This document shows positions 55,500 to 63,119 of a stretch of DNA of 64,000 nt, in pieces. The stretch's first letter is position 1. Every line of letters begins with the position of its first letter. Origin of the DNA: Cyanophora paradoxa CCMP329 (Eukaryota > Plantae > Glaucophyta); contig QPMI01000022.1 in the NCBI GenBank assembly GCA_004431415.1, positions 310,001 to 374,000 of the forward strand, given 5' to 3'. Made by a program: the position numbers and the translations under genes. Below the pieces are notes generated by a model. The model made no database searches, was not told where the DNA came from, and was given only the letters and a program-made list of their open reading frames with translations.

Positions 55500-56182
55500 A
55501 GCCTAAGACTCTGAGAGACGCGGTACAGCGCTTGCGCACCACTTGCGGCCGGTGAGGATCCGTACGCTCACGAAACCGACAGCGACGACCGCGGCGGCCG
55601 CAGCGGCGGTGATAGAGATCGTGCGCTTCGATGCGGACTCTGCGGCGCGGACGTGAGCCGGGCGCCGACCGCGGGCGCAGCATTGCTGTCAATCATATGA
55701 GTCGGGTGCGGACCGGCAGTCTTCTCGGCGGCCTCGGCCTTCTCGGAAACAGCCTCCTTAGACTTGCTGAGGAGAGCAGAGGCGGATTCGAGGAGCGCGA
55801 CGGCCTCCTGCCGAATCTTCTCGGCGTAGCCGGCGGCCTTCTCGCCGTAGCCGGCGACAGCGGCGGGGACGTGAACGGAGGGCAAATGCGAAGGAATGGA
55901 CTTCGCAATCTCTTCCGCCTTCGCAATCGCAGGTCCGGCGTAGCTGCGGCCGCGGGGGGCGGTCACACGGGTCGCGGCGGTTGACCGGTGGGTCGCGGCG
56001 GTTGACGGGCGGGGGAGGCGTATGCACTTCAGAGAGACTAACCGCAGCTGCACGACTCTAGAAAAAATGCTCTGTGACCGGCTAGCGCACCTGGTCACGG
56101 TATCGACGACGATCTTCTTGACCTCCTCGGCCTTGGCCTTAAGAGGGGAAGCAGGTGCAGGTGCAGAGGCCTCGGCCGACAT
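55500..56182 (-). CDS. Small Ala/Lys/Glu-rich helical protein with hydrophobic C-terminus (3' end approximate)
   Basis: MSAEASAPAPASPLKAKAEEVKKIVVDTVT|SYAGPAIAKAEEIAK...KAEAAEKTA|ESASKRTISITAAAAAVVAVGF with GT-AG introns. Confidence 0.5.
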
Positions 56183-56348
56183 CGCTGCTGCTGCTCTTTA
56201 CTTGTGCTGCGTCTGCTGACGGAAACTTACTTCGAGGGGGAAGAACTGTGAAGAGGGTACAAACAACGATCGACCCTGCCTCTACCCCCAGGACGCAGCA
56301 TGCGAGCAGCTAGCTAGCAGAGTGCAACCGACTCGGCAGCTTGCAGAG

Positions 56349-59300
56349 ATGGCGGCCGAACCCGAGACTCCGGGCAGCCCTGACTCCGCCTCGAGCGCTG
56401 ACGCGCTGGGCGGCAAGATGAGGTCAGTTCGTGTTGCGGCTACCGGGCGTCTTGCCTCAGCGGCTATTTATGCTGATGCTTCATCGAGCAGCGAGCTTTC
56501 CGTCTTCGGGCACGTGTTCCGCTCCGTCTGCAATTCGCTCACTCGCATGGTCTACGGAGAAGCGTGGTCCGTCTTGTCTTAGCTAGATTTTGAAGCGCTC
56601 TTTAACACTCTCAAATCTGACGTTCCGCGCGTTCCCGCAGGCTTTATCGTGCGCGGAAGCTCTCGATCCATACGCGCCTTCGTGACCGCTCTGACCTGCC
56701 GCGTAGACCCCGCCCCAAACGGCCAGGGCGTATTAGATTGTTATGAGGTGAGCTCGCCGACGCCGCCACGTGCTCTATCTGCCCTCGATCTGCCGCTCAT
56801 CTCTCGCGCCCTTTCCGCTTCGCAGGGTAAGAAGCCCGCGGTTTCTTCTCCTAGCGCTCTCTCAGTCTCTTTGCAGCCTTCTACATCCAGGCGGCGTGCA
56901 TAAACCACGCTCAGTCGTTCCGCTACTTTCGCAATGTCTGCAAGGCGATGCGGTCCGAAGTTTCATTCATCGCCTCTTCCCGCGCGGTGCTTACATGTGT
57001 ACTTTCTTTTCTGCGGCGATGCACAGATTCAGAGAGGGGGAGGGGATGCCTGGTGCGCTGGCAGCTCAGTCGCGCCGCGCCGAAGAAGCGCGTTCGCCTA
57101 ACCGCCTTACCGATAGGGCGCATGATCAAATTCCGCACCCCGGAGTGGCTCGTGGACGTGTCTATGTACCCCAAGAAGGTCTTCCTGCGCAAGGAAGCGG
57201 CGGCGCAGGTTCGCGGGGCCTCGCCGCCCCCTTAGAGGACTCGCCGCTCTCCACGCCGACCGCGCCCCTTCCCGCAGGTTGGTTTCAAGGCGGCTTTCGG
57301 GTTGCCCCTCTTCTTTCAGAACGGTACCCCCTACGGCGTCCTCATGTTCTTCTCATTCGGGTACCCCCTTCTCCTCTCTTTCTTCCTCCCCACTTTCCTT
57401 TCCTTACGGCCACGCAGCCGCCACGAGATCGACCCCGTCGTCATCAACTACGCATTCGAGCACGCCACGGCGGCCTTCTCTCCCTTCGGGCTCGTCGTGG
57501 GCTCTACGGCGCCCCTCTTCAACCGCCTCTACGTCAACCCGCAGGACCTCACCGTCTTCGAGAAGCGGTACCCCCATTCCGCTTCTTCCCCCCGCCTCCT
57601 TTTTTGACCGCGGGTTTGGCAGGGAGGAGGACCGGACGGACGCCGAACTCGACTCGCTCTCGTCGAAGCTGAAGGATCTGTCCCTGTTCCGCCGCTTCGA
57701 ACACCACACACGAGTACGTTTTTCTTCGTACCCCCTTGTTCTCCCGCCTCGCTTTCTTGCCGACCGACCGCCCGCCCGCCCTGCGCTCCTCAGACCTTCT
57801 GCCGCGTTGCGCGGCTGCGCAAGTACCTCCCGTACGAAACAGGCGAGCGTGCTGTACCCGGGAAGCCCTTGCCTTACTTACGCGCGGGCGGCCGGGCAGT
57901 TTTCAAGGCGGGCGAGACGGGTACCACGTCGTACGTCATCGTCAAGGGCTCGGTACAAATACTGGAGCCCGAGAACCTCCAGGTGAAGCGAATGTTCTTC
58001 CCAGGGCGATCCCGGCCGCCCTCTGAGCGGCTCGAACCTCCCAGGACGGGTACGTGCTGCACTCGTCCGAGACGATCGGCGAGGCTGCGCTCCTGGCAAA
58101 CCAGGTCCAGAGGTGCGGACGGAGGCGCAACGCCGTACCCCGCTCCTTCCCCCGTCTGCCGGCGCCGAGCCGGCACGTCGTTCGCAGAGACGTGACAGCG
58201 ATTACGCTGGAGGAGACGTGGATGCTCGAGATCGGTGCGCGTTTCTCTGTCTCGTCTCATGCCGCCGCCCGCCTCACGCCCCTTAGACCTGAACAAAATC
58301 GCCCCCGCCGAGCGGCCCAACGGAGGCGCCGCCGTCACCTCGCCCTCGAAGCCCGGCGCCGGCGCCAAGGCAGAGGAGAACTCCGAGGTGAGCCGTACCC
58401 CCCCGCACGCCCGTACCCCTTTCAACCGGCCCCGCAGCCGACGTTCCTGTCGGACCCGGACGCCCTCCCGACTCCCGATACCCCCGGGCTCGCCCCGGGG
58501 TACCTCGAAGCCATGCTGAACGACATATTGAGTAACCCGAACCCGTCGCCCTCTCTACCCCCGGCCACACCCTCGAACCTTCCCCCCTCCGCCGGACCCT
58601 CCGTCTCTACCCCCAATCCCTTCGCCCTCTTCAACCAGGCCGTACCCGGCATGGAGCACGTGCTCTGGGACCCCTCCACACCCCTCAACAAGCCCCCGGA
58701 AAGCCCCGGCCCGGGGCGGCCCGCCCCGGACCGGAGCCTGGGCGGCCTGCAGCCCCCCGCCGCCGTAGATATGAGCCGCTTCCAGCCGCCGCCGGTGCCG
58801 GCGCCGATCACGCTCCAGACGCTCCAGCAGCTCCAGGCGCTGTCCCCGGACCAAGCCGCCTCGTCCGAAAGCGGCTCGGCTCGCTCCCCGGGGCTCTCCC
58901 CCCAGCACCCCTCGCCCCTCCCCGGCCCGCCCCTCGACCCCTTCCAGCTGGACGGCAACCCCACCGCCCCGTCCTCGGCCTTCCCCGGCCAGCCCCCCTT
59001 CCCCTTGTCCGCCCCTCCCGGCGCGCCCCTGCGGCCGGGCGCCATCCCGGTCCCCGGGGCCGTTCCTGTACCCGGGGCGCTCTCCCTTGGCCCCCCGATC
59101 CAGCCCAAGTCCCTCAAGAATCACCCCCGACCGGCCCCCGGCATCGTCTTCGCGCACGAGGGCCCAACGGGCGGGGCGACGAGCGCCCTGGCCGCGGCGG
59201 CCCTGGCGCACGGCATGCAGCCGGCGGGGCGGCGGCCGCGGCGGCCGCGGCGGTCACGGCGGCCGCCTTTACGGCGGACGACGACATGGACGACGCTGAC

Positions 59301-60594
59301 GGGGACGGGGACGAGGACGATGTCGACGTGGGCAACTCGCCCGGCGGCGCGGGCGGCGCGGGCGGCGCGGGCGGCCCCGCCTCGGCCTCCTCCTCGTCCG
59401 TGCAGCCGACGTTCACGCCGGGCGCCCCGGGGGGCAGCGAGAAGCGCGTCCGCCCCAAGAAGAAGTCGGCGGCGCACATCACGTACGAAGTCCTCGCCCA
59501 GCATTTCACTGTACCCATCAAGGAGGCGTCCGCCAAGCTCGGGTTTTCGACGACGACGCTCAAGAAGCTCTGCCGGAAGTTCGGGGTGAAGAAGTGGCCG
59601 TTCCGGCAGCTGGCGGTGTTGGATGACTTCGTCGTCTCGTGCATCTCTCGGGACCTCTGCTCCTCCGTCGCCGCCTCCTCGGCCGGGCCCGTCCCCGGCC
59701 TCGGCCTCGCCGGCGCATCCTCGGCCACGCTCGGCGCGGCGGCGGCGGCGGCCGCCGCCGCCGCGGCGCTCCGGCGGGTCCCTGGGCGCCGGGCGTGCCC
59801 GGGGCGCCCCCACGCTGGCCGACATCCAGGCGGCCGTGACGGCGGCGGCGGCGCAGGCGCTCCGCGCCGGCGAGGGCGGCGACGCCGCCGGGTCGTCCAC
59901 GAACGCGCCAACGCCAACCCGTCGCTGGCGGCGGCGGCGGCGGCGCAGGCGCAGGCGCAGCTGCTCGAGACGTTCCTGCGGGGCGTCACGAACGCGGCGG
60001 CCGAGGCGCGCCAGAACGCCGCCGTCGCCACCGCCGCCGCCGTCGCCGCGGCGACCTCCGCCCTCCCCGTGCCCGCCCCGGGCCCCTCCTCCTCCTCCTC
60101 CTCCTCCTCCTCCGCGCCTCCCTCGGCTGGCTTCTCCCCCGTCGGACTCGACCCGGCGTCCCTCCAGCGCATCCGGGCCTCGCTGAGCCCCGCCATCAGC
60201 GGCTCGGTCTCCGACGCCGACCTGCAGGCCTACGTCTCCCGCAGCCTCGCGTCGGGGCCCCTGGGGACCCCGGGCCACCTCCCCATGCCCCCCGGCCAGC
60301 TCCACGTACCCCTCAGCGGCATCAAGCGCAAGGTTCGCTACATCCCCCTACCCCCCATCTTTAGCCCCGTACCCGCCCCGCGCGAGCCTCGCGGCGCTCA
60401 CGTAGCCCCCTCAGAACTCGGAAGGGACGTTGCATGGGATCGGCGGCGGCCCGGGGGCACCAGCTTTCGGGGGCGGCCCCGGGCCGGAGCGCACGCAGAA
60501 CCTCCCCCCCGGTGTGCATCTGCAGGCGGAGGGGCAGCAGAAGGGGAGGGTGCTCGGCCCGGGCGCGTTCTTTAGGGGCACCGGCCCTAGCTAG
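56349..60594 (+). CDS. RWP-RK transcription factor with NLP-type GAF-like region and cyclic-nucleotide-binding domain
   Basis: GAF-like GEGMP|GRMIKFRTPEWLVDVSMYPKKVFLRKEAAAQ|VGFKAAFGLPLFFQNGTPYGVLMF. cNMP domain LKDLSLFRRF...VFKAGETGTTSYVIVKGSVQI...IGEAALLANQVQR|DVTA. RWP-RK domain ITYEVLAQHFTVPIKEASAKLGFSTTTLKKLCRKFGVKKWPFRQL at ~59478-59612. Confidence 0.8.
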
Positions 60595-61374: not shown

Positions 61375-63119
61375 ATGGCGAGGGGGAAGCTGCGGAAGAG
61401 AAGCAGGAGAAGGCGCCCATCGCCCTTCCCGGGCGCGACGAGATCCTAGAGAGAGTTCAGGCACGAAAGCAGTCGAGCTCAGCGCCAGCACCAGATCCCA
61501 CGCTGGAGGCGGAGGACGAATCGCCCGCGCGTGCAGACGGCGGCGCTAGCTCGACGTCCGGCAGGGTCGCCCAATGGCTCGTCCGGCAGAAGCAGGAAGG
61601 TCCGCTGTGCCAACGCGCGCGCGCACGCACGCACGCAAACGCAATTGCAAGCCGCCTCCTCTGATCCGTGCGGTGCGGCAAACGCAGCGATCCCCGTAAT
61701 CCCGGCGCCGCTGAATCTCGAGACGGGCGCCGACGACCCGTTCGGAGCGCCGGAGGAAGAGGAGGATGGGGTGGCCCCCGGCGCGGCCGGCGGCGCCGCC
61801 TGCCCCGCTCCCGCGGCCGTCGCCGCGCTCTACCAACTGCCGACGGCTTCGAAGGCGTCGGCTCCGGCGGCTCCGGCGGCGCTTGCCGCCCCGCCGGACG
61901 AGTTTGACGAGCCGGACCAGTGCCCGATCGTGAGGCGCCGCCTCTGCCGCCCCCGCCAGGCCATCGCGGTGGCCCTCTCCGCGGCATCCTCCCCCGAGAC
62001 CCGCAGCGGCGTCGGCGGCTTCGACACGCCGCCCCCGTCCCAGACCCTCTTCCCCCAGGGCCGATTCGCGCAGCTGTCGGCGTCCGCGTCACCCCCCATC
62101 TCGCGCGGGCCGCCGAGGGCGCCGGGCGACATGTTGGGCCTGGAGCCTCAGCCCCGCATCCGCAGCCTCAGCCCGGCCCCCGCCATGCAGCGGCGGGGAT
62201 CGCAGCTTGAACGAAACTTCTGCTCCCGCCTGCAGCCTGTCGGCCCGGCCGCCCCCGCCGACATCCTCGTCCTGGACGGGTACGGCGAGCCCTCCGGGGG
62301 TACCAGGACGCCATCCAGCGCCGACGAGGACGCGGACGACGTACCCCCCGTCCCCGGCGCCCGCCGCAACTCGGAGGCGGCGGCCCCGCCGGACGCGGCG
62401 AGGCGCCTTCGGCGCCAGTCCCGGACGCACGCCACGGCCCCGCCCGTCCTCGTATCCCCCATCTCGTCCTTCCTGCAGTACCCCTCCGCAGCCCCCGGCT
62501 CGGCCCTCGGGAGCCCCGCCGCCGTCGCGCGCCCCGCCGTCGTGCACCCCATCGTCTCCCCTCGCCTGGGGCCGAGCGCCCCTCCCTCTTTCCCCTTCCC
62601 GATCGGCATGCGGCGCATGAGCGCGCCGTCCCCGATCATGGACCCCCCGCCGCACTTCCCACTCGGGCTGGCGCTTCCCGACGGGGGGGTACCGGTGCAG
62701 CCCCTCTTCGGCGGCCGGCGCTCCTCTGCGCCGGTCGTGTCTCCCGTCGGCAGCCTCTCCTCCACGCTGGTTCGTTGTCATATGATTTTTCGATGTCAAG
62801 TTTCTTTCGATCTCACGCCTCACCTGAGGCGCAGGGAAGCACCGCGGCGTCGACTGTAACGCTCCCGGCGATCGGCTCGCCCTCGCGGGACGCGGGGCCC
62901 GGGCCCGGCCCCCGCCGGCCCGCCTCCCGCCCCGTCGCCCCCCGGTCCCGGCCCGCGCCGGGGGCTCCTGCCTCGGCCTCGGGGGACGTCGGGCCGGGGG
63001 GTACAGCCTCCCCCGGGTCCCCCAGCTTCTCCCGGCCGCTGCCGCCGAGCCCGCTCGCCGCGCCGCAGCAGCCGCAGCCCCAGACGGGCATCGCCCAGCT
63101 CATCCAAATCATGAGATAA
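61375..63119 (+). CDS. Pro/Ala/Ser-rich low-complexity hypothetical protein
   Basis: Long GC3-rich ORF 61531-62859 plus a terminal exon to 63119. No domain recognised. Confidence 0.35.

Follow-up and report, generated by a model that had tools for sequence, protein, structure and literature searches.

The NIN-like proteins (NLPs) of plants, with NLP7 as the reference, carry two GAF domains (GAF-A and GAF-B), then an RWP-RK DNA-binding domain beyond a long linker, and finally a C-terminal PB1 domain. Nitrate is bound by GAF-B, and in NLP7 the triad involved is H404/L406/Y436 (PMC13523203). Chlamydomonas NIT2 and the other chlorophyte GAF-RWP-RK factors have a GAF and an RWP-RK separated by a low-complexity middle, and it is the presence of both domains that defines a NIT2-like protein (PMC4620153). 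NIT2's GAF reportedly does not bind nitrate, and the Chlamydomonas nitrate-assimilation genes of the NIT2 pathway are under the control of cGMP, which acts by a mechanism not yet known (PMC4620153). In bacteria, CRP, FNR and NtcA join a sensor of the cyclic-nucleotide-binding (cNMP) fold to a winged helix-turn-helix that directly follows the C-helix. In eukaryotes, to our knowledge, cAMP and cGMP signals are passed to genes via kinases, Epac and channels.

The Cyanophora paradoxa gene described here lies on the plus strand of the window (the whole stretch of DNA analysed, 64,000 nucleotides). It corresponds to EukProt tig00000113_g5675 and encodes, once four assembly frame errors are corrected, a protein of about 1047 amino acids in which a GAF domain, a cNMP-binding domain, a long Pro/Ala linker and an RWP-RK domain follow one another, without PB1. 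An earlier note, made from the sequence, had placed the gene at 56349-60594; the ATG and the end of the stop codon fall at exactly these coordinates, and the motifs quoted there are present. The features are as follows.

56285-56348, plus strand: 5' UTR, approximate start, deduced from an RNA contig whose part before 58436 measures 1127 nt, where the model has 1063 coding nt
56349-60594, plus strand: coding span of 18 exons (gene model, RNA joints, EukProt model P0001)
56349-56422, 56492-56566, 56641-56648 (8 nt), 56707-56747, 56826 (1 nt), 56877-56952, plus strand: exons 1-6 (gene model)
57027-57052, 57117-57208, 57278-57360, 57418-57567, 57623-57713, 57794-57842, plus strand: exons 7-12 (gene model)
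57900-57982, 58045-58112, 58188-58234, 58287-58387, 58438-60332, 60415-60594, plus strand: exons 13-18 (gene model)
56641-56648, plus strand: 8-nt microexon, its letters present between the joint sides in RNA runs X1 and X5
56826, plus strand: putative 1-nt microexon (G) between two GT-AG introns
56493-57466, plus strand: single GAF domain, split over 9 exons, of the prokaryotic-sensor, NLP GAF-A or bHLH-MYC_N type (Pfam, AF2, fold comparison)
57539-58291, plus strand: cNMP-binding domain of Epac/PKG type, with N-terminal helices, a beta-barrel and a short broken hinge, without a C-helix lid
58078-58200, plus strand: phosphate-binding cassette, Gly-Glu, nine residues, Arg (G321, E322 and R332 of P0001)
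58292-59441, plus strand: long linker of low complexity, rich in Pro and Ala and with an acidic patch; it is probably disordered and resembles an activation domain in sequence
59442-59465, plus strand: basic stretch KRVRPKKK directly before RWP-RK, a putative nuclear localisation signal
59475-59615, plus strand: RWP-RK DNA-binding domain, KWPFRQ variant (Pfam, 69.5 bits)
59616-60594, plus strand: Ala/Pro/Gly-rich C-terminal tail, without PB1, holding the last intron (60333-60414)
59225-59226, plus strand: probable assembly error, a G-run that is one G too short (G inserted in RNA contigs from both studies)
near 59728-59777, after 59800 and near 59910, plus strand: further frame breaks, the fourth deduced from frame arithmetic

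The gene is real and expressed. Its 17 introns measure 50-82 nt each, 16 being GT-AG and one GC-AG, and the exon chain is backed by spliced RNA contigs from two studies. Most joints are directly visible, including those of the 8-nt microexon; the first joint, 58234/58287 and 58387/58438 are supported by binned depth and by the length of the contigs instead. An apparent RNA joint from 56747 to 56876 has non-canonical ends, which the 1-nt exon at 56826 would explain while keeping the frame. One RNA contig runs from the 5' end through the GAF and cNMP domains into the linker, reaching 58695/58868, and the 3' part is represented by pieces at 60125-60330 and from 60413 onward. The gene stands head-to-head with an upstream minus-strand gene.

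The earlier note had treated a frame change near 59220 as a possible sign that the cNMP and RWP-RK parts are separate genes. This frame change is present in the assembly, and it looks like an assembly error since the RNA of both studies carries one more G after 59225. The same contigs carry an extra G after 59800 and a third gap, making three gaps in all. It is highly improbable that gene prediction fused two adjacent genes, one for GAF-cNMP and one for RWP-RK, or pieced together a decaying pseudogene. Four frame breaks in the assembly would fit such a fusion, as would a 54-nt hole in RNA contig cover (58922-58975) that no single RNA contig spans, and the position of the 59225 break outside DNA contig cover. 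However, RNA restores the frame, which stays open through the hole; the hole has a GC content of 78% and is flanked by RNA contigs of equal depth (14.5 and 13.7). Stretches of the Cyanophora assembly with zero Illumina cover were filled from PacBio (PMC6704402), and the homologue from Gloeochaete is an unbroken 994-aa ORF on one 3324-nt contig. The single-gene architecture first proposed is supported. The EukProt model P0001 keeps one 78-nt intron as coding sequence (aa 67-92) and introduces a spurious one around the 59225 break; the retained intron puts a false loop of 26 aa into the GAF structure model. Database searches used the individual exons or P0001 itself, and joined or X-bridged spliced versions served for local comparisons.

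The cNMP domain scores 40.3 bits with Pfam cNMP_binding (cut-off 27.5), and its best sequence match is the first CNB domain of Epac2 (E 9e-10). Its AF2 model shows the cNMP-binding fold with confidence, and its nearest structures are those of Epac, PKG and PKA (Epac2, Z 15.7; Epac1, rmsd 2.3 over 131 residues). It has the fold, N-terminal helices and phosphate-binding cassette of these domains, and differs from them in that the C-helix lid is absent and that the partner is a DNA-binding domain instead of a GEF, kinase or channel. In place of the hinge (alphaB) and lid (alphaC) helices, the AF2 model shows only two 3-residue turns, then disorder (pLDDT 55-59). Past the last barrel strand the sequence is low-complexity in the Cyanophora paralogues too, and the Gloeochaete protein possibly has a short hinge. 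Thus the domain once described as "complete-looking" does have the profile match, the barrel and the cassette, but not the C-terminal lid helix. In known CNB domains the hinge and lid provide affinity and output. Given the conserved cassette, and despite the missing lid helix, binding of cAMP or cGMP is likely.

The Gly, Glu and Arg of the cassette are invariant in 5/5 members, in domains only 24-29% identical, and 12/123 columns are invariant in the cNMP domain versus 4/270 in the linker. Degenerate CNB domains usually lose the ligand-contacting Glu and Arg, and the retention of both in five divergent members from two genera argues against a pseudo-sensor, in which the barrel would be kept as a structural or protein-interaction module on the GAF, or would hold an intrinsic ligand as in KCNH channels, with control exerted by partners or phosphorylation. 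We consider this unlikely, though it is the strongest of the competing explanations. It would account for the missing lid and for the atypical residue after the cassette Arg: this protein has Asp there and its relatives have Cys, Thr, Cys and Leu, whereas Thr/Ser/Asn predominate among 34 other CNB domains. The first CNB domain of Epac2, the best match, is a low-affinity site, and the solved folds nearest to the GAF, those of EGL3 and MYC3, are ligand-free and protein-binding.

An NtcA-like 2-oxoglutarate sensor was ruled out, because the domain is of Epac/PKG type with a canonical cassette; Pfam finds no HTH_Crp match in this protein. The resemblance to CRP, FNR and NtcA lies in the logic of a cNMP-fold sensor and a DNA-binding domain on one chain. 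Here the CNB domain is of eukaryotic type, there is no C-helix dimer coil, a GAF is added, and an RWP-RK about 330 aa away takes the place of the winged helix-turn-helix. The protein is at most a convergent analogue.

The GAF-like block does have a profile match: when cut out it reaches 25.7 bits with Pfam GAF_NLP (cut-off 24.1), and its AF2 model (pLDDT 87) folds as a GAF. Its closest solved folds are the N-termini of EGL3 and MYC3 (EGL3, Z 16.8, rmsd 2.2 over 140 residues), which are likewise N-terminal in transcription factors but are accompanied by a bHLH that is absent here; Pfam bHLH-MYC_N gives 17 bits, below its cut-off of 30. Comparison with NreA gives Z 14.4. With a GAF-A model the glaucophyte GAF reaches 30.5 bits and with a GAF-B model 21.6, while a model built from the prokaryote-type GAFs retrieved with it gives 118. 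Its resemblance is to sensor GAFs of prokaryotic type and to NLP GAF-A rather than to GAF-B, which binds nitrate. A quick tree puts glaucophyte and NLP GAFs on one side, with a support of only 16 for this grouping.

The NLP7 triad was mapped by spacing onto the GAF-B of plant NLPs, with NLP7 itself outside the alignment. The three columns are kept in 9/11, 10/11 and 11/11 plant NLPs. Here they read M/F/F, without the His, and across the glaucophyte family M/F/F, I/I/H, V/L/F and I/F/F. With the triad absent, the nitrate input suggested in the earlier note is not supported. Quite unlikely, too, is the dual-input idea of the earlier note, in which the protein would be a functional equivalent of NLP or NIT2 that senses nitrate, 2-oxoglutarate or some other nitrogen or carbon metabolite chiefly through its GAF and uses the cNMP domain as a secondary input. 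The GAF_NLP score points that way, as do the nearest eukaryotic Atlas cluster, which is chlorophyte GAF-RWP-RK(-PB1), and the NLP-like RWP-RK and PB1 of the Gloeochaete homologue. Against it stand the GAF-A and prokaryote-type scores, the different residues at the triad, the reported failure of NIT2's GAF to bind nitrate (PMC4620153), and the immediate neighbours of the gene, among which no nitrogen gene was recognised.

Between the sensor region and the DNA-binding domain lie about 330 probably disordered residues, for which neither Pfam (58438-59217) nor a homologue search with the linker found a match. The RWP-RK is intact (66.6-69.5 bits; cut-off 29.3) and lacks the NLP-type helix found after this domain in plants and Gloeochaete; a plant-NLP HMM gives 40 bits here versus 76 for Gloeochaete. 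As noted at the outset, there is no PB1, even in the frame-corrected protein (Pfam; hhalign 3%). A vestigial PB1 in the tail, suggested by a short SDADLQ match, was rejected after the hhalign result. The protein is not an RKD (RWP-RK only), its N-terminal part containing GAF and cNMP domains; it has the GAF and RWP-RK of a NIT2-like factor. It differs from NIT2, compared by description only, for which no cNMP-binding domain is reported, and none was seen in the chlorophyte GAF-RWP-RK Atlas clusters.

The layout is common to this gene, two further Cyanophora paralogues, a third paralogue with a broken RWP-RK, and one Gloeochaete transcript. Among the best 150 matches of 1.84 billion sequences searched, only five proteins, all from glaucophytes, have a GAF beside a cNMP domain, and the layout was not found outside glaucophytes. 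Literature searches on RWP-RK together with cyclic-nucleotide binding or with glaucophytes, Cyanophora included, gave no description of it. The combination, which the earlier note did not recognise, is rare. The 80 plant loci retrieved are all NLP-type, with an RWP-RK and, as far as the contigs extend, in most cases GAF(s) and PB1 as well; 0/80 have a cNMP domain. A family-alignment profile retrieved only itself, a fern NLP and one kinase, a search insensitive enough to miss known members; a metagenome scan biased to plant NLP words gave plant NLPs only. No viral RWP-RK relative was found, and sequence searches of the PDB gave neither an NLP nor a PB1.

Plant NLPs have two GAFs and these proteins one, the cNMP domain standing where plants have GAF-B. 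It is better described as occupying the place of the second GAF than as "inserted". PB1 is absent from this gene and from its Cyanophora paralogues, but the Gloeochaete homologue has both the post-RWP helix and a terminal NLP-type PB1-like domain, giving GAF-cNMP-RWP-RK-PB1. Pfam scores this domain at 21.2 bits, below its cut-off of 23.6; hhalign gives 95.8%, and a plant-NLP HMM 27.6 against a maximum of 9.6 in 2000 shuffles. This PB1 is a new observation. It suggests that the NLP scaffold predates the split between glaucophytes and the green line, and makes the bearing on NLP origins stronger than first noted.

On balance, we favor a cyclic-nucleotide-gated, nuclear, one-component RWP-RK transcription factor belonging to a glaucophyte subfamily. 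In its favor count the kept cassette, the domain order common to the family, the intact RWP-RK with its basic stretch, and the cGMP control of nitrate assimilation in Chlamydomonas; against it weigh the missing hinge and lid, the residue after the cassette Arg, the distance of about 330 residues between sensor and DNA-binding domain, and the hole in RNA contig cover. The GAF and cNMP domains would form one regulatory module, with cAMP or cGMP docking in the beta-barrel, the conserved Glu contacting the ribose and the Arg the phosphate. Given the missing lid, the switch would probably be read out by repacking against the neighboring GAF or a partner rather than by a classical hinge. The signal would then free or restrain the distant RWP-RK and the activation region of the linker, as with the N-terminal region of NLP7, or else change nuclear retention or partner binding, and so may act on DNA targets that could include nitrogen-metabolism genes. 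The GAF would most likely be a dimer or partner surface, or bind a second metabolite other than nitrate.

If this holds, cyclic nucleotides would have a direct route to genes, through a transcription factor that carries the cNMP pocket itself. A CNB domain with an intact pocket and no lid helix is also a natural test of how much of the hinge and lid cNMP allostery requires. According to TAPscan v4, the NLP subfamily was gained in the Phragmoplastophyta (PMC11712027), whereas the Gloeochaete homologue, with its GAF, NLP-like RWP-RK and PB1-like domain, points to an older scaffold, to which the nitrate pocket would have been added later through GAF duplication. We propose, tentatively, that a family of glaucophyte transcription factors binds cAMP or cGMP directly, as a eukaryotic counterpart of CRP on an NLP scaffold. 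A GAF...RWP-RK...PB1 protein may already have existed in the ancestor that glaucophytes share with green plants. Its second sensor slot would then have received a cNMP domain in the glaucophyte lineage and, on the green side, a GAF that arose by duplication and binds nitrate.

Cyanophora paradoxa is a glaucophyte with a GC-rich, intron-dense genome that was assembled from PacBio reads (PMC6704402). The model that we built from sequence for the gene at 56349-60594 has 18 exons, and its 17 introns are 50-82 nt each (16 GT-AG and one GC-AG). Contigs from runs X1 and X5, which belong to two studies, are devoid of these introns while those from X14 and X15 contain them, and X1 and X5 are therefore RNA. 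In both RNA sets, a single contig spans the 5' part, the GAF and the cNMP-binding domain and reaches into the linker. An 8-nt microexon is seen in these contigs, and a nearby RNA joint is most readily accounted for by a 1-nt exon at 56826 flanked by two canonical introns. Three other exon joints are supported by the depth and length of the RNA contigs, and are not among the listed joints. The EukProt protein (Cyanophora paradoxa tig00000113_g5675.t1, here P0001) is identical to our model save for one retained intron and an intron invented around the first frame break; the published gene model misses the apparent 1-nt exon at 56826 and retains the intron upstream of it.

An earlier note proposed a GAF-cNMP-RWP-RK protein, with a frame change near 59220 that might separate two genes. 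The RNA closes this break: an extra G is present after 59225, and again after 59800, in both X1 and X5, and altogether RNA and assembly differ by three gaps over 58976-59909. We infer a fourth break near 59910, because the coding bases in the assembly number 3140, four short of 1048 codons. The breaks sit in 77% GC sequence, and assembly stretches without Illumina cover were filled from PacBio (PMC6704402). No RNA contig bridges 58922-58975; the frame is open there, with equal depth on either side. The Gloeochaete wittrockiana homologue (P0005) has an unbroken 994-codon ORF on a single 3324-nt contig. Taken together, we are nearly certain that 56349-60594 is a single gene. Its neighbours are:

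55532-56182, minus strand, head-to-head neighbour: three exons; the 140-aa product is rich in Ala and Lys and has a hydrophobic stretch at its C-terminal end
61397-62859, plus strand, downstream gene: long low-complexity Pro/Ala/Ser-rich ORFs

The head-to-head transcript starts about 40 nt from the 5' end of our gene, the depth of its RNA contigs is about 5-10 times higher, and the two probably share a bidirectional promoter. No functional link between them is evident.

Pfam finds all three domains, each above its own cut-off (RWP-RK 66.6 bits, cNMP_binding 40.3 and, with its region excised, GAF_NLP 25.7), which gives the GAF-like block its profile match. PB1 is absent, as the note had stated, even when the tail is read through its breaks (X at breaks). 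At 60130-60260 the tail carries a short SDADLQ, like the end of an NLP PB1, and IRASL, like a PB1 start, too close together; as a vestigial PB1 this reaches an hhalign probability of 3%, and it is either chance or a collapsed remnant. AlphaFold pLDDT is 87 for both the GAF and the cNMP domain. In fold, the GAF most resembles the N-termini of EGL3/MYC3 (Z 16.8), followed by generic GAFs and by NreA (Z 14.4), and its Atlas neighbours are GAFs of cyanobacterial and other bacterial cyclases/kinases and a chlorophyte GAF-RWP-RK cluster. For the cNMP domain, the best matches are Epac, PKG and PKA.

Searching 1.84 billion representatives with a GAF + cNMP query, we found both domains in only five proteins among the best 150 matches, the remainder matching a single domain. 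All five are glaucophyte:

Cyanophora paradoxa tig00000113_g5675, the gene under study
Cyanophora paralogue tig00000042_g15646
Cyanophora paralogue tig00021428_g21177
Cyanophora paralogue tig00000237_g20459 (P0011), RWP-RK broken in the model
Gloeochaete wittrockiana transcript P0005, L081:159-3143

The RWP-RK of P0011 starts normally and then falls out of register, probably through another assembly frameshift. No Atlas cluster of at least 50 members joins cNMP to RWP-RK, and a cNMP domain is missing from all 80 plant RWP-RK loci examined. No description was found in the literature searched; databases already list the Pfam pair as a precomputed annotation. Our current best estimate is that the architecture is glaucophyte-only so far, from searches blind to very divergent members or GAF-less cNMP-RWP-RK proteins.

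The "complete-looking" cNMP domain of the note is complete only in part. Its Pfam match stands, and the cassette residues G321, E322 and R332 are invariant in all five members at a domain identity of merely 24-29%, with 12 of 123 columns invariant in the domain and 4 of 270 in the linker. Two features count against a live pocket. The residue following the cassette Arg is Asp, and the C-helix lid is absent: in the AlphaFold model the last strand gives way to two short turns and disorder. The Cyanophora paralogues are similar, and the Gloeochaete homologue may keep a short hinge after the barrel. Cyclic-nucleotide binding by the predicted pocket is likely. Given the missing lid, any output would have to bypass the classical mechanism, and the simplest way would be for the domain to repack onto the neighbouring GAF. 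We lean slightly towards a cyclic-nucleotide-gated one-component regulator as the most plausible way in which the product works.

The nitrate input suggested earlier fares less well. The nitrate triad of NLP7 is H404/L406/Y436 (PMC13523203), and its 0/+2/+32 spacing maps to the second GAF (GAF-B) of plant NLPs, where H is found in 9/11, L in 10/11 and Y in 11/11. These columns read M/F/F in our gene and vary among its relatives. The glaucophyte GAF scores higher with the NLP GAF-A model than with GAF-B, and much higher on prokaryote-type sensor GAFs, a set chosen by the same query. Thus the cNMP domain sits where plant NLPs have their nitrate-binding GAF-B. None of this supports nitrate sensing of the NLP7 kind, and by the criteria tested the gene is outside the NLP family.

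The RWP-RK of the Gloeochaete protein is NLP-like, including the helix that follows it (76 bits; 53% identical across 59 residues to the RWP-RK of a fern NLP). The protein also has a C-terminal PB1-like domain, slightly below the Pfam cut-off (E 3e-4). This scores 27.6 bits with the plant-NLP HMM, where none of 2000 shuffles exceeds 9.6, and has an hhalign probability of 95.8%, making this protein GAF-cNMP-RWP-RK-PB1. The basic Lys of this domain is kept and the acidic motif is partly eroded. The GAF-cNMP half aligns collinearly with the genomic paralogues of Cyanophora, and this speaks against contamination from a green alga. The NLP subfamily has been dated to Phragmoplastophyta by TAPscan v4 (PMC11712027), whereas 36% of the members of one chlorophyte Atlas cluster already have PB1. 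A quick GAF tree (support 75 for glaucophytes together, 95 for NLP A + B, 16 for glaucophyte + NLP) is compatible with an older scaffold and does not show it. The gene and its architecture are real, the latter apparently undescribed and so far glaucophyte-confined, and the most economical interpretation is an older scaffold of the form GAF...RWP-RK...PB1, from which Cyanophora lost PB1.
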